From Oikopleura dioica (taxonomy: Eukaryota; Animalia; Chordata): a stretch of DNA of 57,957 nucleotides. The stretch is taken from positions 1 to 57,957 of the forward strand of contig CAJRAX010000006.1 of assembly GCA_907165135.1 (NCBI GenBank), read 5' to 3'. Of this stretch, positions 5,601 to 57,957 are shown piece by piece (the first letter of the stretch is position 1; each line of letters starts with the position of its first letter). A model generated the notes under the pieces. The model saw only the letters and a list, made by a program, of their open reading frames with translations. It searched no databases and had not been told where the DNA came from. Made by a program: the position numbers and the translations under genes.

Positions 5601-8600
5601 TGCTTCATAATCAGCTCCTTTGGTCCCCCATCCGTGAGCTTCTTTTTTGCCTTCATACATTTTATCAACATCTTGACGCATGCGTTTTCTGTCGAAGCCC
5701 CACTTTTCAATAGGCATCAAATCAGTGGTATTATTCTGTTCTGTGCTACGCCATCCTTTGTGTTCTTTCGCCTTGATTCCATGCTTGACACAATACCAAT
5801 ACGGAATCTTGTCTCTTTCCATATCAAAATCGGGATGATCAGGGCCCCATCGAGGTGTTCCGTCTGGGTAGAAGCCAGACACATTCTTGTATCGCTTCTT
5901 ATCGTATTCATTGCGAGTGAACTCGGGAGATCCACTCGACCGCCGACGACGGCGGGGAGGGGATCGGCGAGCTTCACGCGGAGGCGATCTTCTATCGCGA
6001 TCGTCTCGTCTATGTCGACCATCTCTACGAACGCGCCAGTCCGGAGAAGGCGATCGATATCTGTCACTTTCTTTATGAAGGTATCGTCTGCGGCCCATTT
6101 CGTCGAAGTACAAGCCATCGCGTTTACGTTGAGATCTTCCACTAAACGTATCAGGAGCTCTGTCTGACATCTGATAAAGCTCTTCGTTCATATCCATGAT
6201 CTCTTTCTCGGACATGCCAGCAATCGTGAAACTTGGAACTTCAATCCTTTCTACGCCATCGACGAAAGTCACCTTTGAAGAGTCACCAAAGGTTTCAGCT
6301 TTTCGGGATGAAGCCTCATCTATAGTTCGTTCCCGATACTGCTCTTTCAACTTTTGGAGATCTGATTTTCCGACCCACTGAGATTGTGGGATGCCTGGTG
6401 GTGGTTTATGAGCGTATTTCTTCTTTCGAGCACGGATATCGCGCTCTTCATCAGAAACAGTGTACTCATCACGGCGATGTGGGATTCTGTATTTACCCCT
6501 TTCAGTTCTTTTGCGTCGCGGGTTGTAGTAGTCTGAATCACCACTGTCGGAGTCTGATCCAGAGGAGCTCGACCCTTCGGAATCTGTTTTTCCAGTCAAA
6601 TCAAAACACTCGTCTGGGACCAGATTGTCAAATTCTTCAGCAAATCGATTCTTGAGTCGAGCTGGAACAAAGTCCTCATCTACAGGTTCTGCCTTTACAT
6701 CATCGTAGGTCGCATTTCTATTACGAATTCGGTCTTCTCGATCGTTCACTTCCTGTCCAAGTTGATATAAGAAGTCTTCATGATGAAGATAAGCCATTTG
6801 AGACCGGAAAGCATCTTCTTTTGCTTTCTTCTTAGCTTCAGCGATTCTTTTTGCATCTTCATCTTCGGACTCCGATGATGAAGCTTGGTCTTCAAGTTGC
6901 TTTGCTTCCTCTCGAAGCTGTTCTAGTTCCTCGAACATCTTTTTGTAAACAAGAAGCTTATCATCAAATGAGAGAAGTTGGTTGTTAGAATCCAAAAGAG
7001 GTGTTGCGGTAAGTTTGTTGATCCAGCCATCTTCATCATTATCTGGATCTTTTGGTGGATTGAACTGCGGAACGGGTTGTCCGCTGTCTTCGGCGTCGAT
7101 TTCGGCCCGCACCTCATCCATAACGCTCTCATTGGTAGCATTTGGATGAGCATGTTCAGTGATTGGCAACCCTTGTGGGACAGAGCCCTGACCACCCATG
7201 GTCTCGTTCGTCATGTATATCATCATGTTGTAAGCAGCGATTTTCTGTGATTCCGTGGCGAGATCATCCTGTCTATTCATGTAGTATTTTTGTCTACCAC
7301 CACATTCGTTTTGTGTACGTTTGAAGCCATGTGGATTCCCATCAGAAGCATCAAGCCAGTCAGGTGCCGCCGTTTGAGCGTATTTTCCCTTGCCGACGAA
7401 GTAGTTTACTCCTTCACTTTCCGTATTCTTTATGTGTTTTTCGATATTCATGACAGCTTCGGCTCGCTCAGAGCGTTTGTATGCATACTTCCAGATCTCA
7501 GAAGGAAGAGGTCTAGGAGTATTGCACTCGTGGCATTTATCACGAGGAAAGAAACTGTAATAATCGCAGGACTCGCACCACCATCCGCACTGGGAAAAGT
7601 TCTTTCGGAAGCGATTTAGGTAACCAGTGACTTTTTCACCAGCAAGCTGTTTTTCAGCACGACGTTGCATTGCTCTGATTATACGTTCTTTGCATCCCTT
7701 GCCGACGCTCGTATCCAGGCTATTAGCACCTAGAGTACTTAGATAGTCTGGCGACTCGGCAAAACCCTGTTGACTCATGATTTTTCTCGTCTGTTCGGCA
7801 GTTTTCACTCGGAGAGCTCTGTATTCCACCAAATCTTGTCGCACGGCTCCGTGTTTGAAGAAATCACCACCGAATAAACCTTGTTCCTTTGCGTGCTCTC
7901 TTTGCATGTAAATGGGAAGACCTTTAACATCTTGCGGTTTCTCGGCTTCAGCTTCCGGGTTGCTTTCGATCCACTTTTTTAACTGTTGAGTATGTCTCCA
8001 GTCATTTTCGTGAAAGACAGACGGATGAATAAGCTGTTTATTCATATTTCCATCGATATTCTTTGGCGCAGCTATATCACAACCAAAACAAAATTTGTAA
8101 CTTCCGGGATTCTTGTGACAGCACACCTTGCACAGCCAGCAACCATCTTTGAGCCACCAACCCGAGGATAGTTTCTTTGGAATCCAGGCTTCTGATTCAA
8201 GCTGTTGTCTGATTTCAGGACGCTCGTACATCAGCGCTTTTCGTCTTTCCGCCTGTACAGCTCTTCGATATCTCTTCCTCGTTTTGCTTCCATCACCCTT
8301 TGGAGATTTTGGTTCTTCTGGAATTTCTTCTTCTGGTTCTTTTTCCTCGTTGCTATCACTTGATTCTTGAATTTCCCCGGATTCGTAACCGTCCTGGCAA
8401 GCAACAGTATCCGCATTTTTATAAGCATTCTCTTTGATTCTCTCTTCGAGAGCATCTTCCATTGGCAACGGTTGGTCCTTATCGAGATCCAAGCCCGGGT
8501 GAGACTCCTCAATTGATTTCATGAAATCTTGCACCTGGAAGAATTGCATTTCGTCATCAGTCATGACAGGAACCTGCGACATCGCGTTTATGTATTTTGG

Positions 8601-49201: not shown

Positions 49202-50775
49202 ATGCGGGAAGTTATCTCCATCCACGTCGGCCAGGTAAAGCGAAAACAGAGAGATAGAATTAATATTATTTTTCAATCGCTGACCTATTTTCAGGCCGGT
49301 TGCCAAATCGGCAACTCGTGCTGGGAGCTCTACTGCTTGGAGCACGGGATCAACCCCGACGGAACCGTTCCAGCAGGAATGAACAACGAGAACTTCTCGA
49401 CGTTCTTTTCCGAGACTGGAACCGGCCAATTCGTTCCTCGCTCCGTCTTCATGGACTTGGAGTCGTCCGTCATCGGCCAGATCCGCACTGGAACCTACAA
49501 GCAGCTCTTCCACCCGGAGCAGCTGATCACTGGCAAGGTAGCAGTTTTTTTATGATTCCGGACTAAAATCATTTTCAGGAAGATGCAGCGAACAACTACG
49601 CCCGTGGCCACTACACCATCGGCAAGGAGATCATCGACCGGGTCCTGGACCGAATCCGAAAGCTCTCGGATAACTGCACCGGTCTCCAGGGCTTCATGGT
49701 CTTCCACTCCTTTGGTGGCGGCACCGGAAGCGGTTTCACCTCGCTTCTGATGGAGCGACTTTCCGTCGACTACGGAAAGAAGGCGAAGTTCCAGTTCGCG
49801 GTCTACCCAGCTCCGCAGGTGTCGACTGCCGTGGTTGAGCCCTACAACTCGATCTTGACCACACATACGACTCTGGAGCACACCGACTGTGCGTTTATGG
49901 TCGACAATGAGGCCATCTACGATCTCTGTACGAAGAGGTAAGATTGTCAACGCCATTTTATTATCCAACCGAAAATCTTTAGACTCGGCGTAGAGCGACC
50001 ATCGTACAGCAACCTTAACCGAATTATCGCTCAGGTTGTCTCCTCGATCACCGCTTCGCTGCGATTCGAAGGATCGCTCAACGTGGATCTTAACGAGTTC
50101 CAAACGAACTTGGTGCCGTATCCACGAATCCACTTCCCGTTGGCGACCTACGCGCCGATCATTTCCGCCGAAAAAGCGTTCCACGAATCGCTTTCTGTAG
50201 CGGAATTGACCAACGCTTGCTTCGAGCCGGGCGGACAGCTGGTCAAATGCGACCCAAGAACTGGTAAATTTTTAAAAGAGAAAACTAATCCTAAAATTTT
50301 GTCTAGGCAAGTACATGTCGTGCTGCCTGCTCTACCGCGGCGACGTTGTACCCAAGGATGCCAACGCTGCGATCGCCGGCATCAAAGCTCGACGATCCGT
50401 CCAATTCGTCGACTGGTGCCCAACCGGCTTCAAGGTTGGCATCAACAACGAGGCACCCGCCGTCGTGCCGAACTCGGACCTCGCCAAGGTTCGACGAGCA
50501 CTCTGCATGCTCTCTAACACGACGGCGATCGCAGACGCCTGGTCGAGATTGAACCACAAGTTCGATCTCATGTACGCGAAGAGAGCCTTCGTCCACTGGT
50601 AAGAATACTCAAATATGCAAGAGCTAAAGTTACCTTCAGGTATGTCGGTGAAGGCATGGAGGAAGGCGAATTCTCCGAAGCCCGAGAGGATCTCGCAGCC
50701 TTGGAAAAGGATTACGAGGAAGTTGGAATGGACACCAACGACGCTGAGGGCGAAGAAGACGAAGAGGAATATTAA
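49202..50775 (+). CDS. TUBA: Divergent alpha-tubulin (6 exons)
   Basis: [74 protein letters not shown]; C-terminal EEEY*. Confidence 0.97.
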
Positions 50776-51049: not shown

Positions 51050-54000
51050 ATGACAAGGAGAGCTTATTACCCGAAAATTCCGCAGGACGAAAAAGCAAAA
51101 TATGCAAAAATAAGATTAACGACGAAACAACGTTACGTTAAAAGAATTCTAGTGGCGTCTTTTTATTTTTTCTACATCCTTGTCGGCGCATACATTTTCA
51201 GCTTACTTGAGCATCCCCTGGAAAAGAGACTCTGTAATGAAGCGATTGAAGAAATTGAAATTCAGTAAGCATCAGTGTCCCTTTCACTATCAAATGTTCT
51301 TGAAGGATCGAAAATTACGAGAAAACGAAAGAGTATTTGACCAGAGAGCTTATTTTTCCAAATGCGACCCTCCCACCAGAACTGAACATTACAACAGCAA
51401 TATTTGATGTCTCGACTCTAGCCCCAAAAACGATCCTATCTACCCAAAACTTTACTGTCGCTGAAGCAACTGAAACTTATTCAATATCCCCGGCACCAGC
51501 GAGAATTCGACGGCAAGTAAATATTGATAGCATTCTGTTGGAGTACAGCTTCTGTACCCACAACGAAACGGGGGCAATCATCATGGAGCTTCCAGATGAT
51601 GATATGCTGATGATCTTGCGATCCTCCCACGAGGATTTTTTCTCTCACACAGTTTCTATTTCGGGGATCAACGAGGAGAACAAGGAATTCGAGAATGCTG
51701 ATGAATATAAAAGGTAAATTTGCAAGTTCAAATGATTACGATTCAATTTTAAATTTAAGTTTGTTTGGAGGACTAAAGACTTCTTCGATAACAACAGGAC
51801 TTCGATTTGTAAACGATTTCGCTCAATTAACGCTGAAATGGAGTGGCTCAACTGCGATATGTCTTGAAAGATTGATTCTCAAGCTTCCGAATGGGATGCA
51901 AGCCGATTTGATTGCAAAGGAGAAGAGAAACGCAAATTATATTTGGTTCAGTACTAAGTGCGATGATTTTATCGACAGGAAAGAGTTTGAAATATCAACG
52001 AACTGTCGTCAAACTTCAAACTACTTCTTTGATTACGAGTGGACGTCTTGGGCCGACTGGGGAAGCTGTTCAAGCTCATGTGGACTTGGCACCAGGCAAC
52101 GAAGTCGATCTTGTGGCCAAAAGAAGCAGAATTATAATGAATTTGCAGCTATTCCAAGCGAAAGATTCACCGTTTTGCCCGTTGATGAAGTCCGACTTTG
52201 CGCCAATCTTGAGGAGGACTACATCGAAAACCAGCCTTGTTTGAATTCAACCTGTCCGGTTATCACTGAATGGTCGAACTGGTCTGATTGTTCTGAGACT
52301 TGTGGTACTGGAGTTCTTTATCGCAATAGAAAGTGTGAAGTGTCTGGTGATGAATGTCTTGGTGGAGAATTTGAAGTAGAGAGTTGTGAAACAAATGAAA
52401 AGTGTGCGACTGCAGTGTCACCTGAAAATGTAACCATAGACAATATGACAGTGTCAACAGGATCTACTACAGTTTCTCCATCGACAGAGGAAGCTAGTGA
52501 CTGTGTTTGCGAAGAACCTGAAGTTAAAGAAATCATCAAAGAAGTCGATAAAGTTATAGAAGTTGAGTCCGAAGAATGTGAAGCATTGAAAAGACAGGGA
52601 CTTCCACCATGTGTTTATGAAATCATGCAGAACATGACGTATATAAACGGAAAAAGTAATCTTTTGTTCGACCAAAGTGCTACGGTAAGCGTATCTGATA
52701 ATTTACGGTTACTAGAATTTCAATAGTTCAGCTTCACTTTGGACAATGTCAGAATCCCCTATGCTCTTGATGGCAACGTGACTGACATGCTGATGGAAAT
52801 ATCGAGAAATCTAACCGTCGTTACCCAGAACTTGACTTTATTTAGTTACAACTTGACAGACCCAGTATTTGAAAATGTAACAATTGGTGAGACTCAAATT
52901 TGGGAATTCGGTTTGACAAGAGCGAATCTTGAGGCCAGAAGGCTTTCAGAATCAATTCTATCATCTGTCAGTGGGATTATAAGAGACGAAGTGGAGTTGC
53001 TTGTTGAGAGAGCAAATCTAACAGTTAATCAGTCAATAGAACTCATCGATGTGAAGCAAGGAGACCGGCTGTATACTATCGCCAAGCTTCAAAAAACACG
53101 AGATGATGTAGGAAACATAACGTGCGAGGTGGACAGTCTTTTTGAACGATTTGTAGTCGACTTTCTTGTTGACGAACCTAAGCGCATCAAGCATATTATT
53201 AACGATGTCAATTCAGTAATCGACGAGCTAGAAGAGGCAAAGAGTCAATCGATATATTTTATGAGAGCCTTATCGACTGAATTCAGTAGAAATCTCACTT
53301 CAGCTATAGAATCAGAAATGAGAATGGCGGAGGAACTGAAGCAAGTAGAACTCATTCTTATCAACAAAGAAAAGCTGGTTGAAGATCAATCGGAGAAGAT
53401 AGACACCTGTGGGGCCAATCTTGAAAGTACTCTTGAAAAATATTTGGATTGTCGGGTTCCAAAGAGGATGATGAACGGATCGATTTACGGAACAGACTCC
53501 TATCTTCAGCCGGAAAAGAAAATACACGATTCGCTCCAAAACTTCGTTCCTTCTTATGGCACTGAAAATGGAACATTCACTTGTCCGAATTTCTGGAATT
53601 ACAAAAACTCTCTTTTCTACGTTTTCAATACTATCGCCGTTTTGGGGAGCAAAGACATGGAGCCCTTCACAACATCGGGAAAGGTTTTCAAGGTTTTTTA
53701 TTCGCTTGTTGGCATCTGCGCTTTCCTGGCTTTATATTTCTCAATTTCTTCATTTGTTCTTGCGAAGGTTAATAATTACGCTGACAAGCTTGGGAAGAAT
53801 TATTCGTCTGATAAAAAGTATAGAATTCACGTTGGTTTTGTACTTTTTCTTATTTCATTTTGGGTTTGCTTTCTTGTGCTTATACCATCGAATGCTATTT
53901 CACAGGTGAAGTTTTTAGCGAATTCATCAGGTAACATTGAAAATTATTAGATCGAAGGGTGGTCCTTTGGCGATTCTGTGTATTATCTAATGTCATCATC

Positions 54001-54459
54001 CTTCTTCTCTGCAGGCACAGATACAGGAAGGGCGAGAATTCAATCTGTCACTATATTTATTTTCAAAATTCATCGCCTAGTAAGTCCCAAGCTTTCTGCA
54101 TGATAATTACCTTTTATCCATCTATCGAATAGTCATTATTATCTGGAACTTCATGAGCAATGCGAGTGTTTTCATCATCTTTCGATACCTGTTTTCGATT
54201 TCGCAGACTGTCGTTACAGGTTTTTTTGGTCTACTTGATTATTTATAGACAATTATTAGCACGAAAGCGTGAGTTTGAAGAAAGCATCAGACAAAAACAT
54301 ATCGTTGAAAGAAATGTTCATTCGAATGAAGTTGTAAAACACGTCCCTATCCCTAAACCAAGAAGACCGAGGAATGAGCTTCGAGAGGAAGAAATCACCG
54401 CGAGAAGAAATCAATATGGAAATCATCGAGTTCGTTATATGCACAATATTCATCTTTAA
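51050..54459 (+). CDS. Two-pore-domain K+ channel-like protein (~1,050 aa) with ~750-aa extracellular insertion containing 2 TSP1 repeats; degenerate filters
   Basis: M1 YILVGAYIFSLLE..E; P1/M2 WNYKNSLFY..EPFTTSGKVF.VFYSLVGI; M3 hydrophobic; P2 EGWSFGDSVYY; M4 YRIVIIIW; TSP1 WTSWADWGSCSSSCG..RQRSRSC and WSNWSDCSETCG..YRNRKC. ORFs 51050, 51337, 51695 and 52739 are joined by in-phase GT-AG introns. Confidence 0.75.
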
Positions 54460-54538
54460 TAAACTCTTCTTACTAACTCCTAATATTTACTCTGCGCTTT
54501 GCTATTTGTTCTGATTTGTGTTTTTATTGAAAAAAGAG

Positions 54539-55055
54539 ATGGCTAGAGCCTGGATAAAAAAGAAAATTTTACTGTTACCGCTGCCAGTATGAACAATTTT
54601 CAACTGACTATCAGAAGTACGAAATTGATTGTAGATCTTGTGGGGAGAGATTGTTTGAAATTGAAGAAGAACGTGAATATCACGGTGATGGGCGGCTTTT
54701 TGGATATTATAAATGCATATGTGGGAGGTGGTGGGAAAGCGCTTATGCTCAACTTGCTATTTCATCAGTCCCCGCACTTCCTCAGCCTCAAAGGAACAAT
54801 TTTCATACGAGTTCACAACCACATGGAAATCCGACAACCACCAGAAGAACGAATATGCGTCATGACCGATATACTGAGCCTGTCTACACAAACCAGCCGC
54901 TATCTTATTCAACTTTTCCTTATTCATCCACAGTTTCAACAAGAACAGCTCGAAACAATGAAGAAGATTGCTCCTGTTGCCAGTGTCTTTTCTGTATATG
55001 CAAGTGCTTTTGCGGACTAATAGTTATTACTTTCATCACGAATATCATTAATTAG
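54539..55055 (+). CDS. Small Cys-rich protein with partial 3CxxC/ZAR1-like motif and Cys-rich hydrophobic tail (5' end tentative)
   Basis: RLFGYYKCICGRWWESAY; C-terminal CSCCQCLFCICKCFCGLIVITFI. The upstream exon YCYRCQ|SCG joins in phase but needs a 1-nt correction to reach the ATG at 54539. Confidence 0.45.
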
Positions 55056-55659
55056 TTTTAGCTAAAATCACTGACCCGCCTAATTTTTAGATTACTGATC
55101 TGTCCAATAAACATAAATAACAATTACTTGCATGAAACACATTTTAATAGTTTGTTCTTTGCTTGGTATGTTTTCCGTATGTCCGGGTGCCCCCCCCCCC
55201 AATTATATTTTCTAGCAGCGTGGAGAAGCGCCTTTTTAGAAGCGCTTATGTAATCCGGAGCCAATTGCGGGTTCTCGGTGGTGTAAGTTGTACCTGCTGG
55301 CGCTGGCACCGTCGTAAATACTACTGTACCTAGCGAAGGTGTAGTATGGAGCGGTGCAGTACTATTACGATTCTAGTGCTGAGCGAAGTCGCTCCAGTAG
55401 GTGGAGTTGGAGCCAAATCGCATGGAACAAGACGTTCAATCCTTGCCCGGATTATCAATTTTTCCGAGAAAAATTAACAGCAATAAAGCCAAGCTCTAAA
55501 TCCACCTAAATAAGACCTAAAACCCCAAGAGAAAAAATTCGAAGCTCTTAGAGAATCAAGAAGCCTTCTAAACTGGAAATAACTGAGAGGCCATGGTAAA
55601 TTACCGTTTCTAAAAGAGTAGAACTCGTCTGAGAACATCAACTATTCCAATTTGGGAAG

Positions 55660-57957
55660 ATGAAGAAGTTTTCTATATGTGGCTATATTCTAGTCACCTT
55701 GATAAATATTGCATGTTGTGAGAAAACCACAAATCCATACTTGCTCAAGGAATGTTAAAGAAATTAATATTTTAGTGTATCTTCAAAATACGTTAGGTGT
55801 AACAATTAAATTATCCCTGCTTTGTGTAAATATTTCTACCACTTATTGCATTAGGTGAGTATATTCAATCATAATGGAGAGCGGAAGAAAAATAGCCACA
55901 CTTAGCAAAGACGCTAACATTATTTTCACCATAACAAAAATTACTATCCAAAGGATTTCTAAAATGAACATAAGAATCAACGACAATCGTGCGTTTATAT
56001 TTCGTTAACACAACACAAGTTTCTTTATGATACGCAATCGAAATCGTCACCGAAATTCAACTTAGATGAATTTATTCAAGAGGACACACTATCTGGCTGG
56101 AGCAAGTGGACCGAGTGGTCGCAATGCTCGAAGCGTTGCGGCAGCGGGAGACGCATGCGTTATCGGACTTGCCGGACGAACCTCAAAGCTGCTTTCTCAA
56201 AATATTTAACTGGCGCAATTACCTTTCATCAATACCTAAAGGATCAGGTCGCACTCTAGCAATTATCTTAGTAGAAAACGCTCAAAACCAATATTTTCTA
56301 AAAAAGTGCAAACTATTATAAAAAAAAAGAACTAGAAAATGACGTTTTTTTGACCTTTGGTAAAGCGAACACCAACCTGCTTTGGCCAGCCTCTCGAATA
56401 CCTACCTTGCAACGTACACTCGTGTGGGTTGGCATGGAGCCAGTGGGAGTCCTGGTCTACCTGCTCAAAGACTTGTGGGTTTGGAGGTCAGCAGGCTCGT
56501 CTAAGATCATGCAAGCTCGAAAGTCCCAATTTCGGAGTAGCGAGTGGAGAATTTTCCGGAAATCTTGCGATGGAATTGTTTCTCAAGACATATTCAAAAT
56601 GCCAAGGAAATGGATTAGAAAGCCGAAAATGCTCTGTGAAAGTTTGTCCTGCTACGCATATCAAACAGAAAGCAGACTTATTGGAACGACTCAAGCCTAG
56701 AAGCGAGTCGTTTGAGCTCTCCAAGTCTGGATCCTTCGATTGGATGGACTTCTTGATGATCCAGACACTATCGAACGATATCAACTTTGATTTGTCAGCC
56801 GTTGTTGAGATCAACTTATCCGAAAAAGATAATCAATGGAGTGAGCATCTTCTCAACCTCTCTCAGCCCAGTTCACAAAAGCTCAATCTTTGTTACTCGG
56901 CCGTGTTTCTGTTGATGAAGATTATGTTGCACTTCTGATCAATTTCTCGAAAGATGAAGAAGGAAACGGTAAAAAGGCGCGAGTGCTGATAAGAGCGTCG
57001 GAAGAAGACTTGAAATGGAGACAAGCCGAGGTCGAAAATGGATTCAATATCAAGCTCCGCGAAAGCTTAGAAGCAAAAGGCTTCAAAGTTGGAGAAATTT
57101 CTGTAGATTCTGCAACGTCTACGCTCAATTTCTGCACGTTTTTCGGAGATTCGAAAAACGCGGAACCACAGTGCGAAAACGGCGGTTCGTGTTTCACTCG
57201 CAAAAGGGATGATCTGTCGCTGCCCGATCGAGTTTTACGGAGCTAAATGCCAGCATCAGCGATTCGCCCTCCCTTCGAAACCAGAATTTTTGACCGTCGT
57301 GGCAAATTTCAACGAAATCATCATCAAATGGCTGCCGATTTTCGAAGATTCAAGCAGCAATACAGTCATCGAAAGTTTGAAAGTGTCCATCGGAAGCGAT
57401 GTCTACAGTATTTCCGACTTTAATTCCAATCAGCTCAAGAAATCAATCGCTCCTGATACCGAAGTTGAACTAAAAATTCACGTTATCTACAAAAACGGAA
57501 TTATGGCTGAGTCTGAGGTTTACAACATTAGATCTGCTCCGGAACTTCAGAAGCCTGAGATTCTTGAGCGACTCTCAAATATTGTCAAAATGAAATTTGG
57601 TGACGACTCTCTTGTAGAAAGATATACAGTAATGCGCACATACAAAAAGAGGATTGGTAAAGACAGATACAGTGCGCCCATTTTCGAAGGTAGATCCGGA
57701 GAGATGAATGTTGTGCCCCAAATTGCATTTCCGAGTGGACGAGATGTTACTCTTGCGATTCAAGGCCAGACTGAATTCGGCTTGACTAACATCAAGGAAG
57801 TCACAATAAGAATAAAGCATGCAGCTCCTCTCTTTATTGCCGAAAAAATAAAAGTGGGAATCACTAAAGTGGAACTTTACTGGAAACAGGAAATGGACGA
57901 AGAAGATGCTTCCGTGAGTATGCTCAGCTAAGGTTACTTTCAAGCCAGGAAACTTTT
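55660..57957 (+). CDS. Extracellular multidomain protein: signal peptide?, 2 TSP1, SEA-like, EGF, multiple FN3; runs off the window; two compensating frameshifts
   Basis: WSKWTEWSQCSKRCG..RMRYRTC; WSQWESWSTCSKTCG; CENGGSC..CRCPIEFYGAKC; FN3-like PSKPEFLTV..IIIKW. The link from the putative signal peptide MKKFSICGYILVTLINIACC at 55660 to the exon at ~56081 is not resolved. Confidence 0.7.

Follow-up and report, generated by a model that had tools for sequence, protein, structure and literature searches.

An Oikopleura dioica gene predicted to encode a K2P-fold membrane protein with a 752-residue, TSP1-bearing ectodomain at the position of the cap

We analysed a stretch of 57,957 nucleotides from Oikopleura dioica (assembly GCA_907165135.1, contig CAJRAX010000006.1; the whole of this stretch is called the window), which carries on its forward strand, at 51050-54459, one seven-exon gene for a protein related to the two-pore-domain potassium (K2P) channels, a family whose members work as dimers. 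To build the exon chain, all three forward frames were translated and linked across short introns. It opens with the ATG at 51050 and closes with the TAA at 54457-54459, and its 3138 coding nucleotides (nt) translate into 1045 amino acids (aa) with no internal stop. The protein starts with a membrane helix (M1), continues with a loop of 752 residues and with the block P1-M2-M3-P2-M4 (pore loops P1 and P2, membrane helices M2 to M4), and finishes with a basic tail. Introns 1 to 6 measure 41, 46, 42, 45, 58 and 40 nt, respectively; five of the six have GT-AG ends and the fifth has GA-AG ends. The exons, together with the fifth intron, are:

51050..51264, + strand: exon 1; basic cytosolic N-terminus, M1 and the onset of the helix that exits the membrane (Cys62 included)
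51306..51713, + strand: exon 2; continuation of that helix, an N-glycosylated serine/threonine (S/T)-rich spacer and the start of an orphan N-domain
51760..52684, + strand: exon 3; the remaining N-domain, two thrombospondin type 1 (TSP1) repeats, an S/T-rich linker and a conserved Cys-rich helical segment
52727..53905, + strand: exon 4; the final 289 ectodomain residues, then P1, M2 and M3
53951..54026, + strand: exon 5; the P2 pore helix (EGWSFGDSVYY) and the degenerate filter FSAGTD (aa 928-933), which replaces T-I-G-F-G-D
54027..54084, + strand: intron 5; non-canonical GA-AG, 58 nt, inside P2
54085..54219, + strand: exon 6; the PSFLHDNYLLSIYR linker, then M4 (54111-54200)
54260..54459, + strand: exon 7; basic cytosolic tail with RVRYMHNIHL as its last residues, and the stop codon

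The membrane part of the protein follows the K2P plan. Hydropathy gave exactly four membrane segments (aa 32-53, ~838-860, ~884-905 and ~946-970), with both termini basic, and the order M1-P1-M2-M3-P2-M4, four helices with two pore loops, was found complete, since P2-M4 aligns to KCNK10 and to L001, a distant relative introduced below. Pfam, AlphaFold2 and look-up work was done on exon pieces or on the open reading frames (ORFs) of relatives. Where exon 4 encodes P1-M2, Pfam recognised Ion_trans_2 (E 1.3e-6; 28.7 bits, the cut-off being 22.5), and the best PDB match of the window protein was TASK2 (E 1e-5). Frog TREK-2/KCNK10 (P0146) aligned in two blocks, its residues 36-64 to aa 38-66 and its residues 108-263 to aa 804-957. 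Because KCNK10 aligns to M1 and to P1-M4 on either side of it, the insert occupies the position of the cap: 738 window residues lie between the aligned blocks, compared with 44 cap residues in the frog channel. The membrane elements encoded by exons 1 and 4 were placed as follows:

51146..51208, + strand: M1; from hydropathy, ending in the K2P-type VGAYIFSLLE, with a weak alignment to KCNK10 residues 36-64
53594..53653, + strand: P1 pore helix and degenerate filter, VLGSK (aa 821-825) replacing T-I-G-Y-G
53678..53770, + strand: M2; from hydropathy, AlphaFold2 and the KCNK10 alignment
53825..53899, + strand: M3; from hydropathy, AlphaFold2 and the KCNK10 alignment

The original prediction, made from the letters of the window, had proposed a K2P scaffold and had suggested a profile scan as a check. 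The scan put both Ion_trans_2 and TSP_1 above their cut-offs and, together with the four helices and the TREK-2 alignment, upheld the proposal. It is well supported at the level of sequence that the window gene encodes a K2P-fold membrane protein with its cap expanded to a 752-aa ectodomain.

Fragments of relatives were found on marine metagenome and Logan contigs by protein searches with exon 4. L002 (ENA) shows ~71% aa identity to the window protein, while L007 and L008 (ENA, Logan), which are 98% identical to each other, share 84% of their DNA with L002 and ~70% aa identity with the window protein. The three contigs come from two sister lineages of the window organism. L001, a 22.6-kb ENA contig, is distant (23-35% identity) and colinear from M1 to the final residue. 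Taken by itself, exon 1 is 72% identical to L007/L008 and 34% identical to L001. The genes downstream, at 54589-56551 of the window, are syntenic with L007 6808-7078 and L008 3389-4514, and the genes downstream on L007 and L008 match 55210-56551 of the window; between L001 and the window no synteny was found apart from the gene itself.

These relatives bridge the exons of the window gene. The position of intron 1 falls within a single L001 alignment segment (aa 56-271), those of introns 2 and 3 fall within one ORF each in L002 (aa 99-655) and in L008 (aa 72-659), that of intron 4 falls within ORFs of L002, L008 and L001, and those of introns 5 and 6 fall within a 349-aa L001 ORF (7232-8281), which reads on from the helical region, over P1-M2-M3-P2-M4, into the tail. 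In the reverse check, the L001 intron just past M1 and the L002/L008 intron at aa 655/656 correspond to points inside window exons 1 and 4. Since the intron positions differ between the lineages, the lineages cross-check one another, and since every window intron position is continuous in at least one relative, M1, the ectodomain and the pore belong together. Moreover, exon 1 ends in phase 2 and exon 4 starts in phase 0, which makes direct joining of the two impossible, so that no isoform can skip the whole insert. From these comparisons we conclude that M1, ectodomain and pore are almost certainly a single gene. This matches the earlier claim of one in-phase exon chain from M1 through the ectodomain to the pore, here a 1045-aa frame whose intron positions are bridged in L001, L002 and L007/L008. 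The opposite outcome, that M1, the TSP1 region and the pore come from separate genes, was examined by the same comparison of exon structure, which found that the parts belong together and that the end of the ectodomain shares exon 4 with P1-M2-M3.

The gene is transcribed at a low level in the L002-type sister lineage. Three bulk RNA runs, which are of that lineage, each contained 9-12 partly fitting reads, on exons 3, 4 and 7, and a loose read end at 53904 bears L002-type sequence. A single-cell RNA run had zero reads on the window gene.

The GA-AG junction between exons 5 and 6 was set by alignment to L002, L008 and L001, and the conserved coding flanks read on in L008 and L001. A GA-AG intron is present at the matching spot in L002 (56 nt) and in L008, and introns of this kind are frequent in Oikopleura dioica (PMC7072748). 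Two other ways of joining exons 5 and 6 were tried and rejected: the stronger GTAAGT donor at 54080 leads into a stop, and a donor at 54084 is in frame but loses conserved coding sequence. Intron turnover was seen elsewhere in the gene as well. L002 and L008 are without the window introns at 51714-51759, 52685-52726 and 53906-53950, and have an intron of their own at aa 655/656 (1671-1913 in L002). In L010, another relative, an intron of ~785 nt lies within 1-2 codons of the GA-AG intron site, where L001 has no intron.

The loop between M1 and P1 comprises aa 54-805. Of the 22 N-x-S/T sequons of the protein, 20 lie in this loop, as do 24 of its 27 cysteines, a concentration that is as expected of an extracellular loop, here predicted to be N-glycosylated and rich in disulfides. 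The K2P cap normally consists of two helices and ~55-60 aa. No such short two-helix cap (about 55-60 aa) was found in the window protein, in which 771 residues separate the end of M1 from the P1 filter. Among 68 two-pore homologues, the median of this distance was ~60 and the maximum 92 in 67 of them, the exception being a protist transcript, P0004. Two stretches of the loop matched TSP_1 in Pfam (E 7.9e-16; 58.4 bits against a cut-off of 21.6), and both repeats carry the WxxW and CSxTCG motifs of a thrombospondin repeat (TSR). In other TSR proteins, TSP1 motifs are usually C-mannosylated and O-fucosylated. From the N- to the C-terminal side, the loop contains:

51502..51513, + strand: furin-type site RIRR (aa 138-141), the sole R-x-[KR]-R in the protein
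51514..52021, + strand: orphan N-domain (aa 142-295), spanning intron 2; weak model, mostly strands
52040..52255, + strand: TSP1 repeat 1 (aa 302-373); WTSWADW, CSSSCGLG, a long internal insert; Pfam TSP_1
52268..52405, + strand: TSP1 repeat 2 (aa 378-423); WSNWS, CSETCGTG, RNRKC; the best Pfam stretch, positions 2-49 of the 49-position model
52406..52498, + strand: S/T-rich linker (aa 424-454), the least conserved part
52499..52675, + strand: conserved Cys-rich acidic helical segment (aa 455-513), with 84% identity between lineages over aa 461-560
53135..53422, + strand: predicted single helix of ~96 residues (aa 653-748), amphipathic; AlphaFold2 block with a predicted local distance difference test (pLDDT) of ~61-79
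53471..53593, + strand: family-specific pre-P1 segment, MNGSIYG ... C-P-x-F-W, kept in every relative

Thus, the glycosylated, TSP1-bearing ectodomain of ~750 aa that had been proposed is present at the cap position, with 752 aa, 20 sequons and two Pfam TSP_1 stretches. The description of what follows the repeats stood in part. The S/T-rich linker was recovered at aa 424-454 and a long helix is predicted, but a heptad coiled coil was not shown: the periodicity of the ~96-residue helix peaks at 3.6 residues (92, versus 47 at 3.5), and its best heptad register fills 54% of the a/d positions. Between the Cys-rich segment and this helix lies a mixed region of helices and strands. The orphan N-domain had no match in Pfam or in the ESM Atlas, the rest of the loop outside the TSP1 repeats had no family match, and the helical region had no look-alike in the ESM Atlas.

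Two further features of the loop are conserved. Cys62 (51233-51235) and Cys802 (53582-53584, in C-P-x-[LF]-W) are conserved in most relatives, and both are present in P0144/L009, the Oikopleura dioica paralogue described below; a disulfide between them could close the base of the giant loop. The RxRRQ motif at the furin-type site is conserved in L002 (about 130), L008 (about 440) and L001 (about 5140). It is preceded by the M1-proximal helix with its spacer and followed by the N-domain; cleavage there would part M1 from the ectodomain and pore.

We then compared the filter columns in a 25-row alignment. The K2P signature T-x-G-[YFL]-G was found in neither pore loop of the window protein. Its P1 filter reads VLGSK, as does that of L002, where other K2Ps, L001, P0002 and P0003 have TIGYG. 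Its P2 filter reads FSAGT (FSAGA in L002), where L001 has TIGIG, P0002 TVGIG and other K2Ps TIGFG. L008 and P0138 carry these same degenerate filters. K+-selective conduction by the window protein is unlikely, because both filters are remodelled and a Lys sits at the outer mouth of each P1 loop.

The filter loss is old and maintained, and the gene is under strong purifying selection. Between the window and L002, the proportion of nonsynonymous differences (pN) was 0.17 and that of synonymous differences (pS) 0.79; these values are given instead of dN/dS because synonymous sites are saturated. The best conserved part of the protein is the P1-M2 block, with 82% aa identity and a pN of 0.09 in the same comparison. 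This argues, as far as substitution patterns go, that the pore block retains a sequence-specific role.

Other relatives have intact filters. This group consists of L001/P0141, P0142, P0002, P0003, P0143, L003-L006 and L010; it carries the canonical TIGYG and T[IV]G[IF]G, and its identity to the window protein is 23-35% on L001 and up to 46% on short fragments. L001 repeats the order of parts seen in the window: M1, orphan N-domain, TSP1 repeats, Cys-rich helical segment, long helical region, MNGSIYG...CPxLW, pore and a YMxNIxx tail. L003 shows this order too, over the stretch that starts at the TSP1 repeats and reaches the pre-P1 segment, and the other entries are short one-part fragments. Altogether, colinearity with the window gene was seen in four further sequence lineages. 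There are three TSP1 repeats in L001 and in L003, versus two in the window, the third being at the position of the window's S/T-rich linker. The end of the tail is also kept, as VQYMNNINV in L001 and VKYMHNIEL in P0143. In the pore ORF of L001, Ion_trans_2 matched twice (E 5.2e-28), and the solved structures closest to this ORF are TREK-1 (4e-38) and TREK-2 (1e-37), then TASK2 (1.5e-28), TRAAK and TWIK-1. A metagenome scan in which one relative group was used alone returned L010 only. Introns in the intact-filter group are larger (309 nt in L001, up to about 790 nt in L010) and the G+C content is lower, features that favour other larvacean species rather than a paralogue as the source of these sequences.

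In the tree, which was read without the L008 row, the window gene and L002 lie on a very long branch (2.5 changes per site) within a clade (100/99) that also holds the intact-filter relatives and P0144; this larvacean clade is placed apart from the vertebrate TREK proteins. Features found across the clade are a Cys soon after M1, C-P-x-[LF]-W before P1 and the sequon MNGS[IF]YG, and the R-x-R-R-Q site is conserved in its TSP1-type members. As sampled here, the cap-decorated K2Ps look like a larvacean-specific set.

P0144 is an annotated pore-only K2P model of Oikopleura dioica without M1. At L009 6077-11208 (GCA_907165135.1, OU015569.1; OKI2018_I69 annotation), an EGF gene of 669 aa has a K2P M1 at its beginning (6362-6454), and the gene after it, g14001, is P0144; the two are probably one cap-decorated K2P gene split by annotation. 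Ion_trans_2 matches four stretches of P0004 (MMETSP Transcript_22124, 2117 aa), a tandem two-pore protein of a protist. In the first of its units, M1 and P1 are separated by a loop of ~1370 aa that contains Cys-rich repeats along with a C-type lectin domain, an independent giant insert at the cap.

The window gene is closely flanked on both sides. The C-terminal exons of an alpha-tubulin-like gene occupy 50083-50775 (+), its 3' end ~270 nt upstream of the K2P start codon, and the next gene begins ~100 nt downstream. A small Cys-rich ORF lies directly 3' of the K2P gene, at ~54651-55055. At 54457-54464 the TAA stop overlaps an AATAAA signal, which would mean a very short 3' untranslated region. 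No annotated protein for the window gene was found in protein collections by a word-indexed search, which has length limits.

What might such a protein do? The reading that we favour, with a probability of roughly 0.6, is that the window protein derives from a channel and now works as a dimer at the cell surface, as a receptor, an anchor or a partner subunit, with its TSP1 repeats exposed to the extracellular matrix. An ancestral TREK-like leak channel would have had its cap converted into a matrix- or glycan-binding stalk. The K2P core would dimerise, as is established for K2P biology, and two ectodomains would rise from the cap position on long helices. Their TSP1 repeats may bind putative matrix or glycan partners, possibly in the secreted house. 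TSP repeats are also present in the house protein oikosin 23 (PMC3390340). The window copy would no longer be a K+-selective channel, and its pore block may persist because it serves assembly, pairs with a partner subunit that conducts, or allows a changed permeation. The loss of both K+ filters in the window gene favours such a channel-derived receptor, while the TREK-like relatives with canonical filters would keep the option of a tethered channel alive for the family.

Several observations weigh against the channel-derived receptor, or against the gene model beneath it. No read chain or splice joint links M1 to the pore, the RNA being from a diverged lineage with 9-12 partly fitting reads per run. 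The structure models were poor: exon 4 gave a pLDDT of 57 in AlphaFold2, and the top Foldseek matches in the PDB, all of them K2P channels, had an E of ~0.05; the N-terminal ectodomain (L002 ORF, 14-row alignment) gave a pLDDT of 41 and was unusable. Finally, the conservation of P1-M2 would be odd for a mere membrane anchor and seems to leave room for a working pore.

This last point leads to the strongest alternative, that the protein is still an ion channel. With its remodelled filters (Lys and Asp in P1, Thr and Asp in P2), it would form a non-selective or otherwise changed pore, gated by the TSP1 ectodomain pulling on the cap, that is, a tethered mechanosensor. The new filter residues belong to the most conserved block of the protein (82% aa, pN 0.09), among solved structures, those of the mechanically gated TREK channels are nearest to the intact members, and the predicted ~96-residue helix runs from the ectodomain towards P1. 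However, the Gly-aromatic-Gly backbone geometry of a K+ filter is absent from both loops, the two Lys residues that the P1 loops place at the outer mouth would, on general grounds, be expected to repel cations, and the structure models are unreliable. We regard a conducting window protein as possible but doubtful.

Much less probable, indeed very unlikely, is that the locus makes two products, an M1-anchored ectodomain protein and a separate pore protein. NCBI annotation splits the EGF paralogue in just this way (the pore-only P0144 behind the 669-aa gene with a K2P M1), and no transcript among the RNA reads spans the whole window gene. Against this, there is no stop, splice site or room between the ectodomain and the pore, which share exon 4 and, in L001, one ORF; introns of 40-58 nt are too short to contain gene ends; the phase 2 end of exon 1 does not fit the phase 0 start of exon 4; and a pore without M1 would have neither a topology signal nor the outer helix of pore domain 1. 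A decaying K2P pseudogene, in which the loss of both filters and the very long branch of 2.5 changes per site would be signs of degeneration, can be ruled out for practical purposes, since the 1045-codon frame is open in three lineages despite a saturated pS of 0.79, with pN at 0.17, the degenerate filters are retained in all three, and the gene is transcribed.

A broader proposal, which we put forward only tentatively and hold to be improbable as it stands, is that of a larvacean 'adhesion K2P' family. Its members would combine a TREK-like, mechanically gated pore with modular cap ectodomains that tether it to the matrix or the house. Within it, the window gene would be a pore-remodelled receptor, a partner subunit or a channel of new selectivity, possibly split by furin at RxRR into an M1 piece and an ectodomain-pore piece. 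If true, a tether-gated K2P would be a gating design not known in this channel class.

The short cap varies very little among K2Ps and is a hallmark of them; it shapes the path of ion entry and holds the dimer together. A conserved family whose cap has become an adhesive ectodomain of 750-800 residues shows that an entire multi-domain protein can be accommodated at this site of the K2P fold. In the members with intact filters, whose pore most resembles that of the mechanosensitive TREK channels, it also suggests that matrix and pore are linked directly, by force or by a ligand. The window copy, in turn, offers a natural case of a channel fold under strong selection after the loss of both selectivity filters, which makes the purpose of the pore block a directly testable question. 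Because public annotation appears to miss the window gene, and to present its paralogue as two entries, an 'EGF protein' and a 'channel' that has the pore alone, the K2P genes of larvaceans need to be recounted and their models revised.

The TSP1-bearing giant cap is a new architectural variant of the K2P family. The full-text literature searched held no description of a K2P with a TSP1-bearing or giant cap, in agreement with the original prediction that no such cap is known and with the distance of at most 92 residues between M1 and filter in 67 of 68 homologues. Comparable cases are P0004, which has a giant M1-P1 loop, and P0144/L009, which probably has one; both differ from the window protein in the inserted modules; channels of the P0004 or P0144 type were likewise not described in that literature. 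Extracellular TSP1 repeats that bind matrix or glycans on a signalling-type membrane core are found in the BAI/ADGRB adhesion G-protein-coupled receptors, in UNC5 and in semaphorin 5. In these, however, the repeats are N-terminal to the first membrane helix, whereas in the window protein they sit in a loop that joins two membrane elements of a channel fold, and no GAIN/GPS, Ig or Sema domain was matched by Pfam in the pieces of the window protein. In proteins of the polycystin-1/PKD1 type, too, a channel-related membrane core carries a huge ectodomain of adhesive character, and there is a candidate proteolytic site near the membrane. Their fold, a TRP-like core of eleven transmembrane helices (11TM) with a GAIN domain, is unrelated to that of the window protein, in which cleavage is represented by the conserved RxRR motif only. 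With the mechanically gated TREK-1 and TREK-2 (KCNK2/KCNK10), finally, the window protein shares the topology M1-P1-M2-M3-P2-M4, but their cap has two helices and ~45-55 residues, compared with 752 residues with TSP1 repeats and orphan domains here, and the window protein is without both K+ filters and has TASK2 as its own best match in the PDB.

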